Source: Dimorphilus gyrociliatus
Taxonomy: Eukaryota > Animalia > Annelida
Direction: 5' to 3'
NCBI GenBank assembly: GCA_904063045.1
Contig: CAJFCJ010000005.1
Coordinates: forward strand, 3,997,689-4,061,688
Length of the DNA stretch: 64,000 nt
Shown here: positions 10,690 to 55,218 of the stretch, piece by piece
How positions within the stretch are numbered: position 1 is the first letter of the stretch
Layout of the letters: each line of letters begins with the position of its first letter
Program-made: the position numbers and the translations under genes
Notes under the pieces: model-generated
Told to the model about the DNA's origin: nothing
The model's database searches: none
Seen by the model: the letters and a program-made list of their open reading frames with translations, nothing else

Positions 10690-11330
10690 GATATTGATTC
10701 AAAATCTTAACATGTTGACAACCCTAAAGATCAATACTGTAATAACTCTCTACGTACAAACTTTTTAATGTTTTTGCTATATAGGCTCCGCAGCTAGCCA
10801 AACTATGAGCGTTAAAACAGTACAAGATACTGTAAAGCATATACAGAAACAGTTAATTTTATGTGGAACAACTATCGGATAAAACAAAGCAGGTTTATGA
10901 GCGTACAAAATATAATATGGATGAGATTATAATTCTGCCCGAAGGATCTTTATCAGATGAGAACTTTAGCTACGTAGAAGAAGCCATACATTCTTTAAGA
11001 CGGTTCATCCATATTTTAAAAATAGAAAAAGCTATAAAAATATTAATTAAAGCTTTAGCAATTGATTTAGTAAACGACAACATTTTGGAAACCATATTTA
11101 ATTTTATAAGACAAATTCCAAAATTAAGGAGAGTTTGGCTTCTTTCTTAGAATCTTTTATGATTGAATGGGCAGACGGATCGAAGGAATTCTCATACGCC
11201 TTCTATCAAGTGGATGAAACTATTAAGTTTTTTATTAAATGTGCTAATGCATCACAGACATATTGGTTTGTTAAATATTGTAAAAGTACAATTATTCTTT
11301 GAAATATAAATAATTTAGACGCTTGGATTA
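10690..11330 (+). pseudogene. Younger 5'-only pseudogene of the ARM-TIR gene, including its duplicated upstream sequence
   Basis: gatattgattcaaaatcttaa...aaccc.aaagatc.atactgt occurs at about 10690 and about 12193. The start ATGGGCTCTG has become ATAGGCTCCG. There is an internal deletion and frameshifts, and homology stops shortly after exon 1. Confidence 0.85.
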
Positions 11331-12300
11331 TCTCGAATAATCTAAAAATGATGTTTGTATATTAATTTTATGCATTTTTCTATCAACCTTCATTCATGAC
11401 ACAATTTACCGAATTTTCTTTTCTTTTTGTTTCAAAAAGAGATATATAACATAAGATTTATAGAATATGTTCGTATCTAGTATGCCATGTCACTGAATTC
11501 GTTTACTGACGCTGCTAAAAACAAAAAAAATAAGTTCCCTTCTGATTGAATCTGAAAGTAGTAGACCTATGCTGAAGGAAGAATAACTAAAAGGTAAAGT
11601 ACATTAAACATAGAAAAGGCTATCAATATCACCTCTTTCAATTCAAAGATGAAAACAATACATAGACATTCTATAGATAGATGATTAGGACTTTTACTAA
11701 CACGTCCAACCAGGAAAAAGAAGATTCTTTCAAGAAAACATTCCAGAGTCGAAAGTGGCTTGCTACGGGTAAATATACATTTATGAGAAAGGGTACGCAA
11801 AAAACTTTTGAAGCCAAGAAAAAGGGCTCATAAAGGTGCTACAGGATTCGTTTATTCCTTTAGCTCATTTTAGTAGAAAGAGGGCTTTTATTTGCTAAGG
11901 GTGATGCTTCATATCATAGATAAGTTATCCATGTTAGGTTTTTACCAGAGAGAGAGAGAGAGAATAACGATGTTGTAAGAAAATCAGAAATATTTAATCC
12001 TTAGTACACTATGGATAAACTATAGCACATAAATTTATATTTATATATATTTTTATAATATTTTATCAAGTTATTTACAATTTTCCAACGGTTATCTATA
12101 GCTTTTTAAGCATTATATGTATATAAATTTTAATCCAAATACCATACACTGCTTATATTGTATTATATTGTATTCTATATGCATTCTAAATAGATATTGA
12201 TTCAAAATCTTAATGTGTTGGCAACCCCAAAGATCGATACTGTGCTGAATAACTCCCAATGACTATCTGCGTAGACACTTATTAATATATCTCCAGTGTT

Positions 12301-14547
12301 ATGGGCTCTGGTACGAGTCGAAATATGAGCGTTAAAACAGTATTAAACGCTGCAAAACAGATACAGAAACTGGAAAGTAGCATACAACAAGATAGCTCAT
12401 TTTATGTGGAACAACTATCGGAGAAAACGAAACCTCTTTATGAGAGTTCAAAAAATAATATGGATGAAACTTTAATTATGCTAGAAGGATCTATAGCAGA
12501 TGAGAGCTTCCACGACATGGAAGAAGCTATAAATTCTTTAACTGCGCTTACATTTACTCGAATAGCGCCAAAAGAGAAAAAAAAACTAGTTAAAGCGTTA
12601 GCAATTGATTTAGTAAACGCAAAGATTTTGGCAACTATTTTTAAGTTATACAAGACGTATTACAAAGATAAGCCAAGTTTGGCTTCTTCTATAGAATCTT
12701 TATTAATTGAATGGGCAGACGGATCGATGGAATTCTCATACGCCTTCTGCAGGGTGGATGGAGCTATTAAATTTTTTGTTGAATGTGCTGATGTATCACC
12801 TCAGGAGATATTGGTTAGTTAAATATAGTAATAGTGATATTAATCTTTTATTTTATAATCTTTCCAATAGTCGAATAGTAATCAGATGGAACAGATTTTA
12901 ACAGTATTGTATAACTGTGCTCGATTTACTGAATGTAAAATGCTTTTAAAATGCCATAATAGTGTGGATATTTTATTCAAATATACAAAGATAAAAAATT
13001 CAGATTTGAAACTACTAGCAGTATTATTTCTGGCTAATATTGTTGATGAAAATCAATCAGAACTATTTCAACAAGAGACATCTGGCATAAAATATCTAAT
13101 AATTACTTTTATTCAAACAATAAAGAGCAAATCCAAAAGATTTGGTGGCTGGTCTGCTGAGGAGCTTGCGCAAGGTTTGTTTATATATTTTATTCTATTT
13201 TCTTTTAAAATATATCTACTATACTATGTAGACTGTTGGTTTCGTTTATTGCTTTATGTACAATAATTTTTTCCCTTTTAAACAATCATTTAGGTATATC
13301 AAAACTCGCAATAAATGATAAGAATAAAAAGTTATTGGTTGAGAATGGAACACTACCTCCTCTCTATAAATTAATTGATATTGGCGATGATGATGAAATA
13401 AACGTCAGCTGTCAGGCGATTTGGAATTTAGCTTTTGAAGCTGAAAATAAAGAGATAATTTTCAAGAATAAATCTTTAATGGATACTATTAGAAAACTTT
13501 CACAATCGAACAAAGCATATCAAAAAGCTGCTCAGGGAATCATTTTTCTCTATGAAGAATATGAGGATAGTAAAAAGTCAAAAGACCAACGGAAATCATC
13601 TATTGTTAATTCGGACACGGGACATATAATGATCAGTTATCAATGGGGTAATCAAAATGTTTTAAAACAACTTAGCGGCTTCCTTAAGAAACATGATTAT
13701 AAAATATGGATGGATATAGAGAATATGGGTGGTTCTACTCTTCAAGCCATGGCAGAGGCCGTTGAACAATCATCCATTATTCTTCTATGTATTTCGGAAA
13801 AGTATAAAGAGAGTCCTAATTGTCGTATGGGTAAGTTTTCAGTATAACTGTAACTGTTCAATTTATGAAAATGTTAATAATGAAACTTCAGAGGCCGAAT
13901 ACGCATTGAGAAGAAACAAAAGATTCATTCCACTCCTAATGGAAAGAGGCTATCAACCAGACGGATGGCTTGGTATTATGGTTGGAACTCGGCTCTATTA
14001 TGACTTTTCGGGAAAGTATGCTTTTGATGAAAAAGCAACAGAATTAGTAAGAGAATTAGGAAATGAAGGAAAGGCTTCCACAGTAAGATAATAAGTAAAA
14101 ATCAAATGCTAAATATCTTTAATTATAAAAAATTTCTTTAAAGAAAAATTCAAATCACATTATGAAGCAAATTAATTCTTCCTCAACAACGGCAGCTCCA
14201 CCGTATATTAGTAATGCTCCTGTTGTAAGAGCAAATCAAATGCCATCTTTAAAAAGCTGGAATAAACAAGATTTAGAAAACTGGATTAATTCCAATAACC
14301 TGCAAAAATTGTTCGTATAAAATAATTTCATGTTCATTCATTGAAATTCAAATTTCGAATTTATGTTAAATGTTTGATTCTTTCCAGTTTCACTTCGGCA
14401 ACGATGTCAGTTGAAAAGCTAATTTTTCTTCAATCGTTAAAGAGGGAAGCACCTGAATTCTTTTATAAAACCGTGAAGGATGAATATAAAATGAAAGGAA
14501 TTGATGACATTATGCTATTCTCAGATAGCTTTAAGAAATTACCTTGA
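12301..14547 (+). CDS. ARM-repeat / TIR (TIR_2-type) / C-terminal SAM-like protein with an N-myristoylation motif, 6 exons (12301-12813, 12871-13174, 13294-13830, 13892-14082, 14144-14310, 14388-14547)
   Basis: MGSGTS start; helical ARM-like segments (LAINDKNKKLLVENGTLPPL, QAIWNLAF); TIR HIMISYQW...WMDIENM...AVEQS...ISEKYKESPNCRMEAEYA...FIPLLME...WLG; SAM-like LKSWNKQDLENWINSNNL. All five junctions are phase-consistent. Confidence 0.88.
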
Positions 14548-14663: not shown

Positions 14664-15312
14664 TCAATAGGAATTGGTTATGGTTTTTGATGAAGTAAAG
14701 CATAAGTGAAAGAAACCAAATGGTTTGGACTTATTACCTGAAATTTGACCAGTTGATCCTTGCGTAGAGGCAGCTGTACTGGATTGAATAGTTGATCCTT
14801 GCGTCGAGGTATCTGTATCGGATTGAATAGTTGATCCTTGTGTCGAGGTATCTGTATTGGATTGAATAGTTGATCCTTGCGTCGAGGTATCTGTATCGGA
14901 TTGAATAGTTGATTCTTGCGCTGAGGTATCTGTACTGGATTGAACATTTAATCCTTGCGTCGAGGTATCTGTACTGAATTGAATAGTTGATTCTTGCGTA
15001 GTGGCCACCGTACTAGATTGAACAGTTGATGTTGTGAATAAAATTGATGAATCGCCAGGATGTGTTGGTGGTGTATGTGGTGAATTCCCATGATGTATTG
15101 GTGGCGTATGTGGTGAATCGCCAGAGTGTCCTGGTCCAGCAGGTGTTTGGAATCCAGTAACAATTATAAAACTAATTTGATGGGCTGTTGATATGAGACG
15201 AATATACAGTATACATATTGAAAAATTTTAAGAAAACTTAAATAAAAAACTTGCATAAAATTAAATATAGCAGCATTGTTGAGTATAAAGCATAACAGCT
15301 AGTTTTTGCCAT
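14664..15312 (-). CDS. Probable secreted low-complexity protein: His/Pro repeats followed by Ser/Thr/Asp-rich mucin-like 13-aa repeats
   Basis: An open frame over about 14664-15225 lacks its own ATG. A hydrophobic exon MAKTSCYALYSTMLLYLILC (15312-15251) can splice in phase to give ...LCNFIIVTGFQTPAGPG. The first exon is uncertain because the donor is weak. Confidence 0.55.
14751..15029 (-). repeat. Coding tandem repeat, 39-bp unit, about 7 copies (consensus STIQSxTDTSTQG)
   Basis: gttgatccttgcgtcgaggtatctgtatcggattgaata recurs with a 39-nt period on the plus strand. Confidence 0.95.
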
Positions 15313-42911: not shown

Positions 42912-45082
42912 TTAGGACTCTTGCGGGTCAGATTGCTCTTTTTCTGCCTCTCCAGCTGGCTAAAAAAGAACAGAAAGTTCAAGGTTAATAGGTTTATAAA
43001 ATTATTTAATAAGAGGTAAAGAAGGTTAGAAATTATTAACGCTAATGCTAACCTTGTTCTCTGGACTGAGTATGGGAATAGGCGTTCTAAAAGAGTCTGT
43101 TCGCTGTGGAACAGGTGAATAGTAAGTCGTTCCTCCACGAACTCGTTCTTTAGGTGGAGCAGCGTAATATGTAGTTCCCCTATGAACAGTTCCTAGTTCG
43201 CCGCTATCTGGTGGCTATAAGGATGGGAAATTTTAAAAACATGCATTTTCATGATATATAGAAACTATCACTTACCTCGGTCTGAGGCAAAACGGTTGGT
43301 TGAACGGTGTTAGTATAAGGTATTATGTTTTGACCATGAGGAGGAAGAACATAGGGCGAGTGCTGAATTGGTAAATTTGGTACCGGCACCAAAATAGGTG
43401 GGTGAGCAGTGCCCGGAGCAGCCGAAGGAGCTGGATGAATACCCCGATCAAGAAAACCTGTAGCAACCGGCGGAGTGTTCACTTGATTATAAAATATTTG
43501 CTGCTGCTGCTGCTGCTGCTGCTGTTTTTGTATCAATTGTCGCTGGTGCCTAGGAGCCAAGTTAGGAACATACTGACTCGCATTACTTCCTTTCGATTTA
43601 GCTCCTGATCCATTCTCCACCTTGTCATTCTCTTGGACTGTATCTTTATCAGCTTCCTGTTCTGCAGAAGATCCTTTATCGTCTTTTTTCAGTCTCTGTC
43701 TTGTGTATCGTTTAGCTTTTGATTTAGTTTTGACAGAATTAGTTTCAGATTCCTCTTCAAGTTTTACAGTTTGCTGTTGGTGATTGTGGTCACCTCTATT
43801 ATTCAACCTCTCAGGCTCAAAATTACTATTCTTATTTTCTCTTTTAGATTTGGAAACTTCTTCATCTTTCTGCTTATAGTAATACTTCGACTTCGAACTT
43901 GTTCTATAATTGCTATCATTCTCTTCCCTGAACGAATTCCATTCTCCTTGATAGGATCTAGGTCGACGATTCGGTTGCCTATTATTAGATTGATGATTTC
44001 CCTTACCCCTACCCCTACCCCTGCCGCGACCCCTTCCTCTTCCCCTTGGTTGAAATTCGTCGTATGTATAACTATCTTCTCCTCCATACCAATAACGATT
44101 ATTATTTCTCCGGCTATTGCTTGTTCCTGGTCGATCATTGCCTAAAAATTAAAATTCAATGATAGTATAAAAATGACATATTTTAAATTATTTTTTCTTA
44201 TTTCTCTTGATAATAGGATTTTTCTTGATCACTATGAAATTATGTAACCTAAGAGTTTTCTTTAAATAATTTAAAACAAAATTACCTCCTCTAAATCTTC
44301 CCCTGGGAATAAAATCGCCAAGACTCCTGTTCGAAGGCTTTTTTGTATCTGCGCTTTCCCTACCGTTACTTGAAGCAGGTGGTGAAGGGGGTGGTTCATT
44401 ATTAGATCGAATGTCATAACCGTACTTAGCAATTATTTGTGTTCTTGATTTCGGAGCTTGTTCATCCTCTCTAAATCTGTCATGTTCCCATTTCGTCTTA
44501 CCTATCCACAATTGCCCTTTTTCTTTGGCCCGTTTTTCACCCTCCTCTTTATCGTCTTCCTCAACTTCCTCATCTTTCCTATCGTCATGCTCGTAAAAAT
44601 AACCAGTTCTAGGTATATATGCTGGATTCTTTTTATCCTCATCATCGTCTAGTTTGGCCGAAGACTCAGGTTCTTCTTCACCATCACCACTCTGCCGCTC
44701 TTCATTAACGACTTCCTCATCCTCATCAGTAAATTCCGCCGAATACTCATCGGCTGTTTCCTCCTATTCAGAACAAAAACTTAACCTTCTACAAAGAAAA
44801 AAATGCAACAAACCTCTAATGTTTCATATTCAGAATCAGAAGATTTGCCTCCACTCTCGGCATCAGATTTCTATCAAAAAAGAAGAATAATTAGCAACAA
44901 AATTAAAGAACCCAGCGAAAACTGGTCGTAATCGCTCATGATATAAAGCGTTTCCCTAGATAATCCATACTTACTTCAGATTCGGACAACCTTTTTTCTT
45001 TGTTTTCTGAAACTACATCAGACTCTTTCTCAAATTCTTCTTTGGCCTTTGGATTCCTTCTTTTCCGCAAACGAGACGACAT
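42912..45082 (-). CDS. CASC3: CASC3/Barentsz (MLN51) exon-junction-complex subunit, multi-exon
   Basis: Btz/SELOR motif DDDEDKKNPAYIPRTGYFYEHD...KWEHDRFREDEQAPKSRTQIIAKYGYDIR; RS/RG-rich and polyQ regions; GGTTYY motif. Confidence 0.9.
43500..43525 (-). repeat. (CAG)n tract encoding polyglutamine in CASC3
   Basis: ctgctgctgc... on the plus strand; QKQQQQQQQQQ in the protein. Confidence 0.9.
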
Positions 45083-45457
45083 TGTTATTTGCTTCCGGTG
45101 CCTTCCCAGTTCACTTCCGGTAGCCAAGAGCGCGAAAATTTTAAATACGAACTTTACGCCAAAAAATGTTTACATAATATAATACTATAGAACGTTCAGG
45201 ACTTTTAGGTCATTTATAAAGGTCGTCTAAAGCATAAACAAGGTAATTTACATTTTTAATAGTTTATTCAGAAGGTGCGTTTAATACGAGACAGATTATT
45301 AGATAACAAGTACGAAGCACACTGACATCAAACCATTAATATAATTCATATATTGTATTGTACGAATCTATCATTATTACTGACTACTCTATGAGAAATA
45401 TATCAGATGCTATTCAAATTAGTTATTAAAGTTCGACAGAAATGCTTAAGAGAACAA

Positions 45458-47464
45458 TTACATTTTGTTGATACGCTCCTGCATTTTCTTTATCTCTTCA
45501 CATATCTCTTTAGGTAAATCATCCCCAACCTCTCTGTCTAAGAAAGCTTTCGTTTCTTCAATATCCGATTTCCAATAATCCTTGGGCAAAGAGAATAGTT
45601 CGTCCCATTTCACCTTATCTTCAATTCCAGAAAGGTCAATAGATCCTTTTGTTGGAAGATAACCGATGGCAGATTCAACAGCCACATCTTTGTCTTCAAC
45701 TCTCTTACAAACCCAATCCAATACACGGATGTTATCACCAAAGCCAGGCCAAAGGAAATGACCATCCGCACCGGTTCTAAACCAGTTAACATGGAAAATT
45801 TTGGGCAATTTAAGACCAGATTGTCTTCCAAATTGTAGCCAATGATCTAAGTATTCTCCAAAATTGTAACCCATAAATGGTCTCATAGCCATAGGATCAT
45901 GCATGATCTTTTTTCCATGAAATTCCGCAGCAGCAGTTGCTTCGGATTTACAAGCAGCTCCAACGAGGACACCATGGTTCCAACCGTATGATTCAAAAAC
46001 CAACGGGACACCCTCTGGTCTTCTGCCGCCAAACAAGATAGCATCGATTGGTACACCTTCAGGATCTTCCCATTTTGGATGAATGATTGGACATTGAGCA
46101 GCAGGAGAGCAAAATCTGGCATTGGGATGAGCTGCCTTGCCTTCTTCTCCAATTTTCCATCTCTTTCCCAACCAGGTTGTAATGCCAATATTCTTGTCTT
46201 CAACCTCATCTTCGAGTCCTTCCCAATAGTAAGATCCATCGTCCGTCTTTGCAACATTTGTGAAAATCGAATTCTTCTGGAAAGAAGCCATAGCATTTGG
46301 ATTAGTCTTCCAGTTTGTTCCTGGAGCAACTCCAAAGAAACCAGCTTCTGGGTTGATAGCTCGCAATTCTCCCTTTTCGTTGAATCTCATCCAGGCAATA
46401 TCATCTCCTACGCATCTAACTTTCCAGCCAGGTAAAGTTGACTCCAGCATAGCCAAATTTGTTTTGCCGCACGCAGAGGGAAAAGCTGCAGCGATGTAAT
46501 GTTCTTTACCACCTGGCTTTGTGATACCCATGATAAGCATGTGCTCAGCCATCCATCCTTCATCTCTAGCAATAGCATTCGCAATACGAAGAGCAAAACA
46601 CTTCTTTCCCAAAAGAGAATTACCACCATATCCAGATCCAAAGGATTTCACTTTTCTCTCTTCAGGAAAATGGGCAATGAAAATTCTTTCAGGGTTGCAT
46701 GGCCAGTGGTTGACCACCTTCTTTCTCCATGGGCGAGGGCATCCCATGGAGTGAATACATTTCACGAAATCTCCGTCTCCAAGAACTTCCCAAATTTTGG
46801 AAGTAACGCGGGTCATAACACGCATGCAGAGCAATACATAGTTAGAATCAGTAATTTCAATACCAATTTTCGACAAGGGAGATCCAACTGGCCCCATAGA
46901 AAAAGGTATAACGTACATCATTCTGCCTGCCATACAACCAGGAAATCTCGACTGTAGTTCTTTTTGACAGTCTTCGGGCGAGATCCATTGTCCGAGACCT
47001 CCTTTAGCGTCACCGTGACATCTTGGTACAGTTTTATGTTTTTCTTTCGTGCAAATCCATGTTTTACTCTCCACACGGGCGACATCTGCCGGATCGGTAC
47101 GGCACACGTAGCAGTTTTCATACTTCTCCAATTGCTCTAATGTTCCTCTTTCTTCGAGCTTGTGAATTATCTCTGTTGCTTCTTCGTTTGAACCATCACA
47201 TATAAAGATACCGCGAGGCTTCAGATAATCAGCCTATATAAAAAACAAAAACAGAAATAATTTTTTTTTGAAACTTAGTATTGTAACATTAAAATTTGAT
47301 AAAATCTCCTATTAGCTTACATAAAACGCAATAAACTTCTTCGCTTTGGTGGGAAGAGCATGGAAATCTCCTTTAGCAATAGGAATATGGCCCAAATGCG
47401 GTACGATGATTTCATGAACTTCAGTGTATTTAATTTCAGGTTCGACGTCTAGTTCTCGACTCAT
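45458..47464 (-). CDS. PCK: Phosphoenolpyruvate carboxykinase (GTP-dependent), two exons
   Basis: SFGSGYGGNSLLGKKCFALRIA, WMAEHM, AFPSACGKTNLAM, CVGDDIAW, INPEAGFFGVAPGT, HDPMAMRPF, NWFR...FLWPGFGDN. Confidence 0.97.
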
Positions 47465-47834
47465 GGCTGCAAATTTTATTCCGAAAGGCAAGACAATGCA
47501 AATCTCTGGCAAGAGCAGATACTTTCACACCAAGCTCGGATTTAAGAGTGAAGAGCAGTAAGGGTGACCTACAGTCGTCTCGTTCGAGATATAACCTTGG
47601 AAGGTTGTAGACTGGTTTTTAAAATACCCTTAATATTGTTTCATGCAACTGCATATCGTTTATAATATCCATATTTATTAGAAAAAATTTTCTTAATAAA
47701 GAATAAAAAGAAAAATATTTTCTGATTTTAAAATCCCTAAATGAATCAGGTTACCAGTTTATATCCTGGCAGCCATCTTGCGTGAAAATGAGTGTGTTGA
47801 TAGAATGAGCGGATTTGTAAATTATCCAATAAAA
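47465..47834. promoter_or_regulatory. Compact head-to-head region between PCK and strawberry notch, with a YY1-like motif (CAAGATGGCTGCC on the minus strand, 47768-47780)
   Basis: The two ATGs are 370 bp apart on opposite strands; the motif is read directly. Confidence 0.5.
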
Positions 47835-50800
47835 ATGGCAGATAATCGACTAGTTTTTAATCAGAGTGTCGATCAGGTAATTGTGAAAAACTTTTAAAAC
47901 AATAACTATGACTTTAAAACTCAGTAGTTCAATGCTAGATATTAAAAAGCCTTCTGTTTTCGTTTTTCGTCTCTCCTTCCCTATAATATTGATGAGCCAT
48001 CCATTGAAACCAACATCGAAACTACCTAATAGCATTAGAAAACTGCTTAATATAAAAATGCAAATATTTTATTAATAATTATTGTTAAAATATATGAAAA
48101 ATAATTTAATTGATGAAGTATAGGAGTAAGCAAATGTTTAGTAAATCTGGAATTGAAAGTTACATAAAAGTGTCGTAAAATTTCTTTTAAGCTCATTCAT
48201 CATACTTTAATAGTGACTAATTATATATTTACATTACAGGATATTCTTAGCAAAGCGCTGAACAGTTCAGGAGTACTGCTAAATGATGGTGAATTCAATA
48301 AAACACCCAACGCGGTGCACTCTATACCTCAGGCAAGTAATTTCTCAATAGCTTGAAATCGATGAATTTATTACTTGTCGATGAAATTTGACTCTGAATG
48401 TTCATAATTTGGATTCTAAACATTTTTGCCAAAACTTAATAGTGATGGTTTTACAAGTAAAGTCATGATGTATTTCGTCTGCTTCTCTCATTCTAAAGTG
48501 CTAAATAACCATAAGTTTACAAAGCATAAGTTGTTAAATTGTCAGTTTCTAGCCTTGGCTGCAGAAGTTTTACTTACAGTATATAGTTGTATTACGAAAA
48601 GAAGCATATACAGTATTTGCAATTTTTAAGAAGGGACACATGTTTAAAATTGGTTTTGCTTAACCAAGACTTTCTTTAGTCTAAATATTTATTTAATTTT
48701 ACTAAACAGCAGCCAACATTGGTTCGTGTCATACAAGCTCCGATACGAACCCAACCCACACAGCAAATCCAAAATATTACGGTGTTAAAGCAGCCTCAAG
48801 CAACTCCTGTTTACCAACCAAGAATGGTCCAAGTTCAAGGATTGCGAACTGGATCTCCAACAATCATTCACAATGCTTCACATCCCGTTCTGACTCTATC
48901 TGCTCAGGCATCACCTACATCAAATGTTTATGTGGTTCGGAATACAACAAATTCGCCTAAACCGGTAACGATTAGTCATGTACAATCGGCACCGAGCTTG
49001 CTTACTAGTCAACAAGCTGTTCAGGCTACAGACAAAAAGCCTATGATAATTCAAGTTATGCCAAAGTCCACCGAGGAGGTATGAAAATGTTTCTATTTAA
49101 GCATTTTCAACACCCTATTAATTTTAAATCCAATAATTGTACTTAGGTTGTCGAAGAAGACGAAGGAGAAATCCTTCATCAAGCCGAAACCTACTCAATT
49201 TACAAACCGGCAAAAATTCGGCGAGGAGTTTCTCATCCTGATGTTGTCGTTGAATCTGCTTCTTTAGCCAGTGTACTGCCACCTGATCCAGATTTTCAAA
49301 TGAAATTGCCTTTGGAAATAACAGATGAGGGTCATTTATCAGCGATTCAGTACGAGACTGTTCTCTATGCTTGCCAAAGACACGAACAATTGCTACCTGA
49401 TGGAAATCGAGCAGGATTCCTTGTTGGAGATGGTGCCGGTGTAGGAAAAGGTGCTTGTTCTGTTTTTCTAATGTTTATTGTACACCATGGCCGATAAGAC
49501 ATGTACAAAATTTCACAATAGTAGTATAGTTGTATCTTATGTAGTAAATCATTATTTTCTTATAATATTTTAGGAAGAACAATTGCCGGGATAATATATG
49601 AAAATTATTTGAGAAAGAGGAAAAGGGTACTCTGGTTGAGCGTTTCAAATGATTTAAAACTAGATGCCGAAAGGGATCTAAGGGATGTTGGTGCTGGACA
49701 TATTCCTGTGTATAGCTTAAATAAATTAAAGTACAAGAAAATTTCATCGTCCGAGAATGGAAGTATTAAGAAAGGTGTTATTTTTGCAACATACACCTCA
49801 CTCGTTAGCAAAAGTAGTAGTGGGGCCCAAGAAGGACGATACAATTCAAGATACAAGCAACTACTGCATTGGTTAAAAGACAAGGAAGGTTGTTAATTAC
49901 TGTTTCTCTTTCTATATAGTATTTCAATTAGTAACAAGAATTAAGGTTACTTTGTATTGATTTTGATAACAATTAAAATGATTCGGACAAATTTTAACCA
50001 AGAAACCCCTATCGACCTCTCTTTAAAAACATTTTGAAAAATTCTAGGTTTGATAGTCTTCGATGAGTGTCATCGAGCAAAAAATCTTCGACCAGCGGGC
50101 ACTGGAAAGTCGACAAAGACTGGTCAGGCCGTACAAGGTCTACAGACATATCTCAATGATGCTCGTATAGTATACGCTTCTGCTACTGGAGCAACAGAGC
50201 CAGCACACATGGCGTATATGGTTCGATTAGGCTTATGGGGTGAAGGAACTCCTTTTCTTGAATTTTCAGAATTTATATCAACTGTGAATGCTCGTGGAGT
50301 AGCCGCCATGGAATTAGTTGCCATGGATATGAAATTGAGAGGTCTATACATTGCTAGGCAATTAAGTTTCCATGGAGTAACCTTCCATGTTCAAGATGTA
50401 ACACCTCCTGAGAAATTTTTAGAAGTATACGATAAAGCCTGTATCCTATGGCATAAAGTTATTAGGTATTTTCAAACGGCTTTGTCAAAGGTAACGGAAA
50501 TTACTTTTTTAAATAATTGTTATAAAATACCTCTTTTGTTACTCAGTTACCCAATATTTCCAAGAATGTTATGTCACAAGTTTGGTCGGCCCAACAGCGT
50601 TTCTTTCGCAGTCTTTGCATATCGGCTAAACTTGGTAGATGTGCTGAAATGGTGGAAGTTGCTCTGAGATCCGGAAAATGCGTTGTTATTGGTCTTCAAT
50701 CAACTGGTGAATCACAGTTGAGAGATGAATTAGAAGACGGAGGAAACATTGATCAGGATCAATTGTCTTCAGCCACAAAGCATATCTTAGATTCATTAGT

Positions 50801-53085
50801 TAGGAAACATTTCCCTACAGGCGGTGGATTTCCCTCTTTTATTCGAGATAATTCACCATCACCTAGTCCGTCTCCACCTCCACCCAAACGAAAAAAATAC
50901 GAAAGTGAGGAGTCTTCTTCGGATTCCGAAGATTCTGGATCTAGTTCGGATGAAAATCCGTTTTTGGCAAGTGATGATGAAGATCCTTGGTTAAGAGAAA
51001 AGAAATCAAGGAAGAAGAAGAAGCCTCCAAAAGTTTCTTCTTTGACAAATGGTAAGCTAGCTACTAATTCAGATTATTTGAATAGTAATTAATTTGCTAT
51101 TTGTAATTTCAGGTGATTTAGATGAAGACGAGGAGACAAAAACTAACCGCATTGTCGAATCAATTATTTGCTCTGATAAATTAAAAGAATTCTCTGATGG
51201 GAATACCACCGATGAAGATCTTAAATTAAAGAAAATGAAAATTGAATTACTACAAGAAATTGAAGATTTGGGTAAAATATTACCGGGAAACCCTTTAGAT
51301 GATTTAATCGATCGTTTAGGTGGACCAGATAGGGTAGCTGAAATGACAGGTCGAAAAATGCGCATGGTATGTAACGACATGGGAAAATATGATATTGAAC
51401 AAAGACGATGCGACAATCAGCCTATTGAGATGACAAATATCATGGAAAAAGGGGCATTTATGGATGCTGATAAAAAGATTGCGATAATTTCTGATGCTGC
51501 CAGTTCGGGAATATCCTTACACGCCGATAGAAGAGCTATCAACCAAAGTAAAAGGGTTCATATAACGCTTGAATTGCCCTGGTCAGCCGATAGAGCTATT
51601 CAGCAGTTTGGTCGAACACATCGATCAAATCAAGTGTCTGCTCCCGAATATCACTTTTTGATTTCGACATTTGGTGGTGAAAGGCGTTTTGCCGCAACTG
51701 TTGCTAAGAGGTTAGAGAGTTTAGGTGCTTTAACACATGGAGACCGTCGTGCCACTGAGACAAGAGACCTCAGTCAGTTTAACATCGATACAAAATATGG
51801 AAGAGTTGCATTAGAAAGAATGCTTAAAGGCCTTACTAATTGCGGCCCTCTTCTCCCACCACCCCCAGAGGCTGGTCAGGATTTTGTAAGCAGGGCTCAA
51901 AAGGCATTAAAGGCTGTTAACATTTTAGAAAGTTACAATGACGTTTATAACATCGAGAGAGATTCACTAACAATTGGAAAGTTTTTGAATCGTATTTTAT
52001 GTATACCAACTCGCTTGCAAAATGCTATCTTCAAGTATTTTACAGATTATTTGAACACAGCCATCAAAGAAGCAAAAAAGTTTGGTAGTTTTGATGAAGG
52101 CATATTAGATTTGACTTCTGGAGCTGAGTTAGCTAAGGAGATAAATATTAACACATTTGAAAGCAGTATGGGGGGTTCCAGTAAAACTCAATTGGCTTTA
52201 TATCAATTAGCAATAGATAGGGGTATGTCTTATGCCGATGCTTTACATCAGTGGAGACAACACGACGGAGAAAGCGATGGATTTTATAGAGCTAAGACAG
52301 GCTCAACCAGGCTGATTCAATTGGCGATTAAATATTCTAAACCCCAAGCTGCTGGGTATTTTCGATACAAGAAAAGTAACAAGCAAGATGAACAATTGTA
52401 CAAAGTTTATACACCTCATACCGGTAGACAACCTCGATTAACCACCTTTGACAAACTTCAAAAGAAATTCGAAAAGATTGACACGGGAGAAGCAGGAGCT
52501 CTGTGGAAGAAGCAACATTCATTCACTGAAACTGGGTGTCTTCATAAATATCTTAAAAAAACTTGTCACTCGGAAAACTGTTCTCTTGGAATTAGAAATC
52601 AAATTTATCATATTCTAGCCGGAAGTTTACTGTCCGTCTGGGACAAAGTGGAAAGGATATTACAGATGACAAGAAGCGGCGTGCATGAGCGTATGCAGAT
52701 TGTCAGAGTGAGCACAGAGGATGGTAGAAGAATAGTTGGAGTTGTTATTCCGAAGAATTCCGTGCAGCTACTTGAGGAAGTTTTTTCAGGCAAAAAAGAT
52801 TTATACAGTGGATCTGCTCCCTCAAATACTACAAATACCTTCCAGCAGGTTAATGCTGAAAAATCAAACTTTAAAAGAATGTTTGCCACTACAAAAGATA
52901 TACGACCAATTACTTCTCTTCAACAAGACAAAGAACAACCTGTTGAAAAGGAAAAAGCAACCACTCAATCTGTTCCAGTTGCTGAAGAGAAAGTTGAGGC
53001 TGCTCCGGAACCAGAACGAACTGTTCTTCCTGACGAAGACGAAACGTTTCCAGAGGAAAGCTACGAAGATATGCCGACATTTTGA
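47835..53085 (+). CDS. SBNO1: Strawberry notch homolog (SBNO/sno), multi-exon
   Basis: N-terminal [11 protein letters not shown]; [16 protein letters not shown]; GDGAGVGKG; FDECH; YASATGA; [21 protein letters not shown]; [16 protein letters not shown]. Confidence 0.95.
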
Positions 53086-53463
53086 AGTGTATAATTTTTA
53101 CTATTTATATATGTAAAATGTTACACATATATGTTTGTACATATATACGTGTTTGTGTTTATCGGGGAACAGTTTAAATACAATCACGAAATTTTTTCGA
53201 ATGTTAATTAATGACCAACAGGCCTGCCAGTTCGTTGATATTGAAATTTTAAACTGTACGTACATACAGTGTCTACTTTTATAAATATTAAATATATCAT
53301 ATAAGAGCATTTCAAGTATTTTACGTTTAATTTTAATCCAAAATATACATAGTTTTGTACATATAAACCGAAATGTGTCTTAAACATCTTGTTACACAAT
53401 TTACAAATTTGCTTATTAGGTTTTTAAAGTTTTATAAGTTTATTATAATTCGTTTCTTTCTTC

Positions 53464-55218
53464 CTAGTTCTCTTCATCATCGGATTCTGTCAAGATTAGA
53501 AAAATATTAGCATTTTAGAGTAATATAGAGAAATTAAGATTCAGTTAATATCTTACCTTCTTCGGCATTCTTAAGCCAATCGACAAATTGGCTAACTTGC
53601 TCGAGGAATACACTCTTTCCCTTGGAAAGATGTCCGTCTTTATGCCATTTCAGAATTGAGTCCTCTCCAACAACATCTGCTTTATAGAATAGGACAACAA
53701 TTCGACCGAATACCTTCATGAATTGCATATTGTCATAGCAGTACTCTTGGCATCTGCGAAGGAGGCACAGTTCAGCTCTTGGAGTACAGCAAGCAGCGGC
53801 TAAAAGTGGAGTGTAACACTTTAGATGTCTTAAAGCTTGATCGGCAACAAGTTCTTCCTTTTTGTTCCATTCGACGGCAGACATAACCTTATTCCAAACT
53901 AAACCAACTAGTTCGACATCGGTTAAACCGCTTTGGGCGCCTTCTGCCTTGATCCATGCCACAATTTCGTTAGCATCGGCCTCGTCTTCGATCAAATTGG
54001 ATAACTGTTCCCCCAGCTGTTTTTTTAGTCCCTGGGAAGCCTTTGAGATTTGCATCTCGGCAATTGAAAGAAGACCCTCAGTTTTAAAATGGGCACAAAA
54101 GTGCTCCGTAGTTCGACGAGTCGAAGGTAAGATGTTTAAAAGCTTATCATCGAGCGATGCTCGACGCAAGCTGGAGGATACATTGTTAGCGTCTTTTTCC
54201 TTTATCCAAATGGCAAACATATCCGTAGCAAAATCTAGAGCAAGGCCGTCCTTTGCCAAATGATCATCAGTGTTGAAAAGAGGTGCCAATGAATTATGTT
54301 TGACAAGACCTTGAGCCATGCACATTCCAACAACCTGTGCAAGACGCTTTCTAGCTTCTGGAGTAAAGGCCTTCAGGAAAATAATCAACTTGCTTAATTC
54401 ATCCTCAAAGGCTTTTTCCAAATATTTATAACGGCGAATAAGTTTAAAAAATACACAATAATATGCTTTCACGTCCTCCTCCGTTTCCGCCAAGAATACA
54501 TAACGTTGGGCCTTTTCGGCACCATCGTCGACGGTATGACCTCCAGGAGCCAACATTCCCCCAGTGAAGAGGACATCGAAGAGTACTTCGCCATATCTGA
54601 TTGATATCAATTGAATTTTATTAGCCCACTAATTCGAATATGATAACAATCACTTACCGTCTATAGTCCAATTTGTTACCGGCCGAATCGAGGAATTTAC
54701 TCAAACTGTCCAAATCGTTACCAGCTTCTTTTAGTCCTGCAACTAGTGAATCACGGAAAGCTTGGGGCTCGTACTTCTCTTTTTCATCTATCAACAAATA
54801 TATCTCTTATGATACGCCTGTTTACAGCTTTCTAAGGTCTATGTCTTGTAATTAGGCTCAGTCTTTTTTTTGTATGTTTAATTGACGTTAGTTTTTCAAT
54901 GTGATTAGCGAATTATTCTATGTACTCATATATCAAAATTTGGGATGGACTGTGTAGATTCTCTATAATCTGTGCTTTTGTGTTAAATTCTGCCCGCGTA
55001 CGGTGCATCATACACAAAATTTTAAAAAATTTTTAAAATTGGCGCCATCCTTTCTCTCTTTAAGTAATATCCGGTTGACCTTCTTTAAGACAAGACATTT
55101 TGCTATGACTCAGAAAGCATGACTAAAACTACGCATATGAATAATTGTAAAACAAACCCCTTTTACGCGTCTTTATGCGCTGGCCTTGTAGAACCGGTTT
55201 TTCTTGCTTTTGACTCAT
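53464..55218 (-). CDS. BZW: BZW / eIF5-mimic protein (5MP), 4 coding exons
   Basis: MSQKQEKPVLQGQRIKTRKRDEKEKY; LDYRRYGEVLFDVLF; IRRYKYLEKAFEDE; W2 domain ending FVDWLKNAEEESDDEEN*. Confidence 0.95.

Follow-up and report, generated by a model that had tools for sequence, protein, structure and literature searches.

An ARM-TIR-SAM gene of Dimorphilus gyrociliatus: a transcribed member of an ancient animal family with a myristoylation-type start, a conserved catalytic-position glutamate and a divergent SAM domain

The question raised by positions 12301-14547 on the plus strand of a 64,000-nt stretch of the Dimorphilus gyrociliatus genome (hereafter the window) is what a protein would do that carries ARM, TIR and SAM domains in this order behind a myristoylation-type start: whether it is an enzyme acting on nicotinamide adenine dinucleotide (NAD+), a non-enzymatic adaptor, or SARM1 in rearranged form. 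Judged by its sequence, the locus is the D. gyrociliatus member of an ancient animal ARM-TIR-SAM family, whose proteins of ~620-700 residues extend from corals to amphioxus. The gene product combines an MG motif, an ARM region, a TIR_2 domain with a glutamate at residue 452 and a divergent SAM domain, and from sequence and structural modelling we favor, at a probability of roughly 55%, the reading that this family member is a membrane-tethered, SAM-assembled TIR enzyme or signaling protein. The kind of protein is already catalogued, and the window gene is a well-documented example of it with a predicted function.

The gene is real, transcribed and spliced as modelled. The exon model was built outward from the ATG at 12301 and gives a coding region of six exons, 1872 nt, or 623 codons plus stop, in AT-rich DNA (~30% G+C) with very short introns, those within the coding region all being GT-AG and measuring 57, 119, 61, 61 and 77 nt. 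Expressed sequence came from the one public run holding the locus (X1; library type not on record), taken as Logan contigs. A 2102-nt X1 contig covers 12193-14310 with introns 1-4 removed exactly at the model junctions and otherwise no differences, and a joint at 14310|14388 (GT..AG) supports the removal of intron 5. All five coding junctions, including the splice at 13830|13892 through the codon for Glu 452, are thus seen in expressed sequence, and an RNA contig over 14388-14800 takes in the last coding exon. Because a genome search found no intronless (processed) copy of the gene, and exons 1, 5 and 6 occur in the genome at this single intron-containing locus, the spliced contig is RNA-derived and not a processed DNA copy. 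For intron 5 only one canonical donor, att|GTTCGT at 14311, preserves the frame, and the RNA joint agrees with it; a stronger-looking donor, ttc|GTATAA at 14315, was rejected for its wrong frame, the joint 14310|14388 confirming the other choice. Alongside the spliced joint, a 137-nt X1 contig (14281-14417) retains intron 5. This unspliced contig could be pre-mRNA or an instance of intron retention, which would truncate the SAM domain.

The TIR domain is divided between two exons, and their junction falls within the codon of the candidate catalytic residue. Coding exon 3 (13294-13830) encodes residues 273-451 and the first base of Glu 452, ends in SPNCRM, and carries the N-terminal two thirds of TIR_2 from about residue 384. 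Coding exon 4 (13892-14082) completes Glu 452, encodes residues 453-515 and carries the C-terminal third of the domain (EAEYALRR...PDGWLG...). Joining the two makes a GAG codon (g|ag) and the reading SPNCRMEAEYA. A preliminary description of the locus, made from the letters alone, had proposed exactly this split codon at 13830/13892, and it is now seen in the spliced X1 contig, which keeps the Glu and does not show the alternative splice that was named there as a refutation. Pfam scans were run exon by exon, with contiguous paralogues from elsewhere in the genome (L004, L020 and L021) and database homologues standing in for the whole protein. The TIR_2 profile is split accordingly, its positions 1-69 matching exon 3 (E 1.2e-14) from residue 111 of the exon peptide and its positions 73-121 matching exon 4, which secures the TIR_2-type assignment made at the outset. 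Exon arithmetic puts the TIR at about residues 384-503 and the Glu at residue 452.

Comparison within the family and with solved structures strengthens the case for this glutamate. Both TIR pieces align to the closest paralogue, at 66% and 55% identity. The contiguous paralogue TIRs match Pfam TIR_2 at E 1e-16 to 1e-22; intron 3 is absent from them, and they read SANCRMEAEYT, SPFCRMEAEYV, SPSCRAEAEYM and SASCRTEGDYA, with the Glu kept in all. The family TIR is marked by the motifs HxMISYQW, GSTLxAMAxAVE, CRxEAEY and PDGWLG. Among 181 family TIRs examined, 160 had a locatable C-R/K-x-x motif, and the Glu is present in 159 of these; in the family alignment its column is at least 90% conserved. 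Alignment through the paralogue and the family profile sets Glu 452 against the glutamate of W-C-x-x-E in RPS4, RPP1 and Cat1. Searched against solved structures, the family TIR profile finds Cat1 at 1.7e-9, RPS4 at 1.8e-5 and SARM1 at ~1e-3, and the Cat1 and RPS4/RPP1 TIRs are its best solved relatives.

The family to which the gene belongs is large and widely distributed. An exhaustive HMMER search with exon 3 returned 2835 cluster representatives at a threshold of E<=0.001, of which 1056 also pass E<=1e-10. Among the full-length matches, the best are 45-52% identical over exon 3; they come from Haliotis rubra, H. rufescens, Sinanodonta woodiana and Branchiostoma belcheri and are all named 'uncharacterized'; a protein of the crinoid Antedon mediterranea is 39% identical and has the MGSGTSR start in common, and further matches, in corals (Acropora, Montipora) and a brittle star, came from a word search in which the L004 paralogue was the query. 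Of the paralogues within the D. gyrociliatus genome, two stand in tandem on contig C12 (L020), another lies on C9 (L021), and a further one, on C31 (L004), is an intronless open frame of 645 codons, or 631 residues from the first ATG; the L004 protein matches an 'unnamed protein product' of D. gyrociliatus at 100% identity. These paralogues are 31-42% identical to exon 3 of the window gene, the exception being the TIR domains of the C12 pair at 56-63%. Because the paralogues in its own genome are, these C12 TIRs excepted, the less similar to exon 3, the window gene is a conservative member of the family. The family corresponds to a TIR cluster named A0A0B7AZE4_1, and it probably also figures among the 'ecTIR-DC' families in the survey of Gerdol et al. 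2017.

The protein itself has very probably been listed before. With its Glu at residue 452 and its TIR at ~384-503 by exon count, the gene product is very probably the 623-residue UniProt entry A0A7I8VH84. Hurieva et al. (2026; bioRxiv 10.64898/2026.04.20.719644) surveyed ~16,000 eukaryotic TIR domains, and their Table S2 gives A0A7I8VH84 a TIR at 381-507, a TPR-clan (ARM) region at 44-360, the glutamate at 452 (assigned by structural alignment) and a place in cluster A0A0B7AZE4_1. Invertebrate immunome surveys, for example that of Aplysia, file ARM-TIR proteins as putative Toll-like receptor (TLR) adaptors (PMC9334734, PMC6321704). In these surveys, and in Table S2 for nearly all members, the proteins appear as ARM/TPR plus TIR only, and we found no description there of the SAM domain or of the conserved myristoylation motif. 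The remark in the preliminary description that little functional work exists on ARM-TIR proteins is a fair one, although the family is catalogued and a protein of matching coordinates stands in Table S2 with its Glu 452. Set against the other members of the cluster, the window gene is alike in architecture, length, TIR motifs, C-terminal domain and MGxGxS start, and nothing essential differs; its own marks are the intron in the Glu codon, which also occurs in an orthologue on a related contig and is absent from the paralogues in the genome, and a valine in the SAM domain that is taken up below.

The N-terminal motif suggests where the protein acts. Coding exon 1 (12301-12813) encodes residues 1-171, opening with MGSGTSRN and continuing into the helical N-terminal part of the ARM region. 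The start fits the PROSITE-type myristoylation pattern MG-x-x-x-S/T/A/G/C/N, as do 57 of 144 full-length-like homologues, where the chance expectation is a few per cent. Homologues begin MGSGASRN (Acropora), MGSGGSRH, MGCGTSFP (abalone), MGSASSVE (mussel), MGSAPTKP (amphioxus) and MGSGTSRS (crinoid), and the orthologue on the related contig begins MGSGASRQ. The MGxxxS pattern pointed out in the preliminary description is thus present and conserved across phyla, as a motif, and the protein is probably anchored to the membrane by a myristoyl group.

The ARM region follows this start and continues up to the TIR. Coding exon 2 (12871-13174) encodes residues 172-272 and the first base of Gly 273 and consists of ARM-like helical repeats, and exon 3 opens with a Pfam Arm repeat (residues 7-46 of the exon peptide, 280-319 of the protein) that scores 25.6 bits over a cut-off of 20.6 and stands directly N-terminal of the TIR. 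With Arm followed by TIR_2, and with the SAM profile falling on exons 5 and 6, the ARM-TIR-SAM order first read from the window stands. In the full-length family profile, the ARM part matches designed ARM proteins, Vac8 (E 5.9e-16), ODAD2/ARMC4, APC and the catenins. Vac8, the best natural match in the PDB, is a lipid-anchored (N-myristoylated and palmitoylated) ARM solenoid of the yeast vacuole and has neither TIR nor SAM. The likeness to Vac8 is that of generic ARM repeats, and a shared function is not implied.

The C-terminal domain is the part of the protein that routine annotation passes over. Coding exon 5 (14144-14310) encodes residues 516-570 and two bases of Phe 571, comprising a Ser/Thr/Pro-rich linker and the first SAM helices (SWNKQDLENWINSNNL), and coding exon 6 (14388-14547) encodes residues 571-623 and the TGA stop, with the remainder of the domain (…EKLIFLQSLKREAPEFFYK…). 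Pfam gave no match on either exon. A family C-terminal profile, in a search of the six exon peptides only, matches residues 30-55 of exon 5 with its positions 4-29 (E 2e-7) and residues 6-51 of exon 6 with its positions 37-82 (E 2.5e-16). The domain it describes is ~75 residues long (W-T-x-x-D-V-x-x-W-L ... E-A-P-E-F-F-Y) and forms the extreme C-terminus in about 165 of the 204 homologues collected. With a profile built from 100 family sequences, SAM-domain proteins occur throughout the listed PDB matches, among them liprin-beta-1 (4.3e-12), ETV6, the SAM of SMS1 (1.7e-7, over the full domain), SHANK and the SARM1 SAM (2.6e-6).

Modelling of paralogues leads to the same fold. For the contiguous domain of the C9 paralogue (L021:4534-4782), AlphaFold2 supplied with the family alignment produced five helices at a predicted local distance difference test (pLDDT) score of 91. 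When this model was compared with 48,161 chains by VIA-align, the top 24 were all SAM, the best being the tandem SAM of SARM1 (Z 7.1, root-mean-square deviation 2.6 Å, 65 residues); the Z is middling and the list uniform. Foldseek of the same model against the PDB placed SAM at most of the top ranks, all at E>1, and VIA-align and the profile search were relied on instead. An ESM Atlas model of L004 matched SAM clusters at template-modelling (TM) scores of 0.64-0.68 and, more closely (TM 0.84), the tail of a mollusc ARM+TIR cluster, and a single-sequence AlphaFold2 model of L004, at pLDDT 38, was not usable. A two-copy SAM complex prediction, in which the alignment was not used, scored 0.02 and is no evidence either way. 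By profile and by model, the C-terminal domain is a divergent SAM subfamily missed by routine annotation. The SAM-like domain over two small exons in the preliminary description is accordingly upheld, by the two halves of the family profile on exons 5 and 6 and by the L021 domain model, which folds as SAM.

What these parts might do together can be set out as a model. The myristoyl group would hold the protein at the membrane; the ARM solenoid may bind a protein or peptide partner, or restrain the TIR; and the SAM domain would self-associate and so gather the TIR domains. Once assembled, the TIRs may use NAD+, either to make cyclic ADP-ribose (cADPR) or ADP-ribose or to deplete it, and may thereby give an immune or stress signal or act as a death switch. 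In this model, a putative catalysis is deduced from conservation of the Glu together with the activity of sister clusters, the conserved motif points to membrane tethering, and the modelled SAM fold points to oligomerization. Sister clusters of A0A0B7AZE4_1 include TIRs with Glu-dependent activity, from an oyster protein of 639 residues, Adineta, herring and coelacanth, which make cADPR or deplete NAD+; the coelacanth TIR, which depletes NAD+, has the pattern S-x-N-C-x-x-E (bioRxiv 10.64898/2026.04.20.719644). The coelacanth and herring TIRs carry the same S-x-N/S-C-x-x-E pattern as the family of the window gene, and an NAD+-cleaving activity of the window protein is plausible from its sequence.

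Several observations weigh against this model. In Table S4 of the same survey, the 'Active' column is blank for four isolated TIRs of cluster A0A0B7AZE4_1 itself, from Chlamydomonas, Branchiostoma lanceolatum (652 residues), spotted gar and Phallusia (bioRxiv 10.64898/2026.04.20.719644). The negative is a weak one, because the known enzymes RPS4, RPP1 and RUN1 are also blank in this E. coli assay (bioRxiv 10.64898/2026.04.20.719644), and if the TIRs have to be assembled, the silence of the isolated cluster TIRs in a bacterial screen would be accounted for. The 'executioner' role proposed at first nevertheless goes too far and is a putative one: the isolated cluster TIRs were inactive, and the activity lies in sister clusters. 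The placing of Glu 452 in an S-x-W-C-x-x-E motif held for the Glu, which aligns with that of RPS4, RPP1 and Cat1, and failed for the Trp: SARM1, plant and Cat1 TIRs have a tryptophan four residues ahead of the Glu, where this protein has Asn and the family Asn or Ser. The ARM region showed no specific likeness to the ARM of SARM1 that binds nicotinamide mononucleotide (NMN) and NAD+, the full-length profile aligning to SARM1 chains through SAM and TIR only; because it matches generic ARM proteins and not the SARM1 ARM, gating by NMN/NAD+ is unsupported, as is the 'ARM-gated' element of the preliminary description. The three closest in-genome paralogues examined begin MA… or MN… and have no MG start, and therefore membrane anchoring is not obligatory in the family. 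Pfam SAM_1, SAM_2 and SAM_3 stayed below their cut-offs on every family member tried, SAM_3 reaching E 0.0015-0.12, and the window gene has Val at the family's near-invariant SAM Gly.

That the four isolated cluster TIRs yielded neither product nor NAD+ depletion in E. coli, and that the Trp is missing, would sit comfortably with a non-enzymatic adaptor or scaffold, in which the TIR makes TIR-TIR contacts at the membrane with Toll-like or interleukin-1 receptor-like receptors or with other TIR proteins, ARM and SAM recruit partners, and the Glu has a structural or binding part. ARM and SAM are classic interaction modules, the ARM region is like that of peptide-binding ARM proteins, and the immunome surveys cited above class ARM-TIR proteins in just this way. 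We nonetheless think an adaptor unlikely, if deserving of serious consideration. The Glu is near-invariant across hundreds of sequences from cnidarians to chordates, as it is in catalytic TIRs, whereas most animal TLR and interleukin-receptor TIRs are without it (Hurieva et al. 2026; bioRxiv 10.64898/2026.04.20.719644). The sister clusters that share the S-x-N/S-C-x-x-E pattern are active, and the assay that was negative for the cluster TIRs missed three known enzymes as well.

Far less probable is a SARM1 orthologue or rearranged copy doing the job of SARM1, that is, NMN/NAD+-sensing destruction of axons or cells. The three domain types are the same, in structure the SAM comes closest to the SARM1 tandem SAM, and family profiles match the SAM and TIR of SARM1; with SARM1, dSarm and TIR-1 the window protein also has in common ARM, SAM and TIR in one chain, a Glu on helix alpha-C and a likely need for oligomerization. 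A canonical SARM1 gene, however, lies on another contig (C13, L022:2209-4452, minus strand), with a 748-residue frame containing ARM, two SAM domains at Pfam level (SAM_1/SAM_2) and a TIR reading DWIHREI. The window protein runs ARM-TIR-SAM with one SAM, whereas SARM1 runs ARM-SAM-SAM-TIR with a tandem SAM; its TIR, of the TIR_2 type, is closer in score to Cat1 and the plant TIRs than to SARM1, its ARM region is generic and not aligned to that of SARM1, and the family has its own conservation, which extends from corals to amphioxus. SARM1 carries a mitochondrial targeting sequence, where the window gene has a myristoylation-type start. Relative to its best solved relatives, Cat1 and the RPS4/RPP1 TIRs, the family is likewise set apart, by eukaryotic flanks of ARM, SAM and lipid anchor. 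Orthology to SARM1 is refuted by the separate SARM1 in the genome, the domain order and the differences in TIR and ARM profiles, and the original statement that this is not SARM1 was correct. Scarcely credible, finally, is a gene model assembled from chance open reading frames (ORFs), or a pseudogene in decay. A decayed partial copy does lie 1 kb upstream, one contig retains intron 5, and there are two upstream ATGs. Against this, the 5' exon and coding exons 1-5 stand joined in the spliced contig without any difference, and exons 5 and 6 are linked by a joint of their own; the frame is open over 623 codons, an orthologue on the related contig is 69-85% identical in exons 3 and 4 with the same start, and all domain hallmarks are intact. 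The pseudogene reading is refuted by the spliced X1 contig, the genome search having found no processed copy.

The frame of the SARM1 gene on C13 apparently reads through a short hydrophobic insert in its TIR, which may be an unspliced small intron. A different gene, with a TIR followed by a Pfam-level SAM_2 and then a second TIR-like stretch, lies on contig C2 (L023:1700-2935, minus strand), and a second TIR ORF (L023:1000-1638) adjoins it. Contigs C5, C12, C35, C186 and C246 contain many near-identical long ORFs (770-890 residues) with two TIR_2 domains each, in tandem arrays, for example four copies at C12:340-360 kb; together these ORFs make up a large TIR expansion in a 78-Mb genome.

The surroundings of the gene complete its description. 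Its mRNA begins with a non-coding 5' exon at 11487-11767, the 5' limit being approximate and set by the furthest reach of an RNA contig. The long X1 contig reaches 282 nt 5' of 12193, and its loose letters there are exactly those of window positions 11738-11767. An intron of 426 nt (11768-12193) separates this exon from the first coding exon, whose 5' untranslated part occupies 12194-12300, the corresponding piece of the X1 contig beginning at 12193. Two short upstream ORFs start from ATGs at 12213 and 12259; ahead of the ATG at 12301, its frame is closed by a TAA at 12283-85. The upstream relic at 10690-11300 (plus strand) is a decayed duplicate of the first coding exon, 73.7% identical by blastn over 659 columns with 51 gap positions, running from the acceptor to 35 nt into intron 1; its ATG has become ATA, it has stops and frameshifts, and its tblastn pieces fall in three frames. 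The argument that 'decayed copies' alongside the gene fit an immune role loses its footing here, as only one partial copy of the exon-1 region is present. The syntenic locus on the related contig (L024:4621-9218), likewise with a G protein-coupled receptor gene upstream, contains two ARM-TIR-SAM genes in tandem, both apparently intact, compared with one intact gene and a decayed exon-1 fragment in Dimorphilus. The downstream gene of the two is the orthologue, 69% identical in exon 3 and 85% in exon 4, with the Glu codon split likewise.

Elsewhere in the window, a Ser/Thr-rich ORF of 114 residues (14664-15030, minus strand), which carries 7.2 copies of a 39-nt tandem repeat (85% matches) and has no Pfam match, converges on the 3' end of the gene, where the RNA contig extends to 14800. 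The stretch 44000-55000 is richer in G+C (0.36-0.40) and includes housekeeping genes, namely PEPCK (45461-47131, minus strand), a Strawberry-notch C-terminal exon (51094-53082, plus strand) and 5MP/BZW (53537-54610, minus strand).

Animal TIR enzymes beyond SARM1 have only recently been tested, and the ARM-TIR-SAM family is large (>1000 cluster representatives), old (corals to amphioxus, with some fish) and entirely uncharacterized. Two of its features are under-described: the lipid-anchor motif, which is conserved, and the SAM domain, which escapes Pfam. As a tentative proposal, these features may define a second, SARM1-independent line of animal TIR enzymes, anchored by a myristoyl group (in many species with a palmitoyl group in addition) and active only once the cryptic C-terminal SAM domain assembles. 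If this is true, the family would represent a membrane-proximal pathway for an NAD+-derived signal, conserved from cnidarians to cephalochordates.

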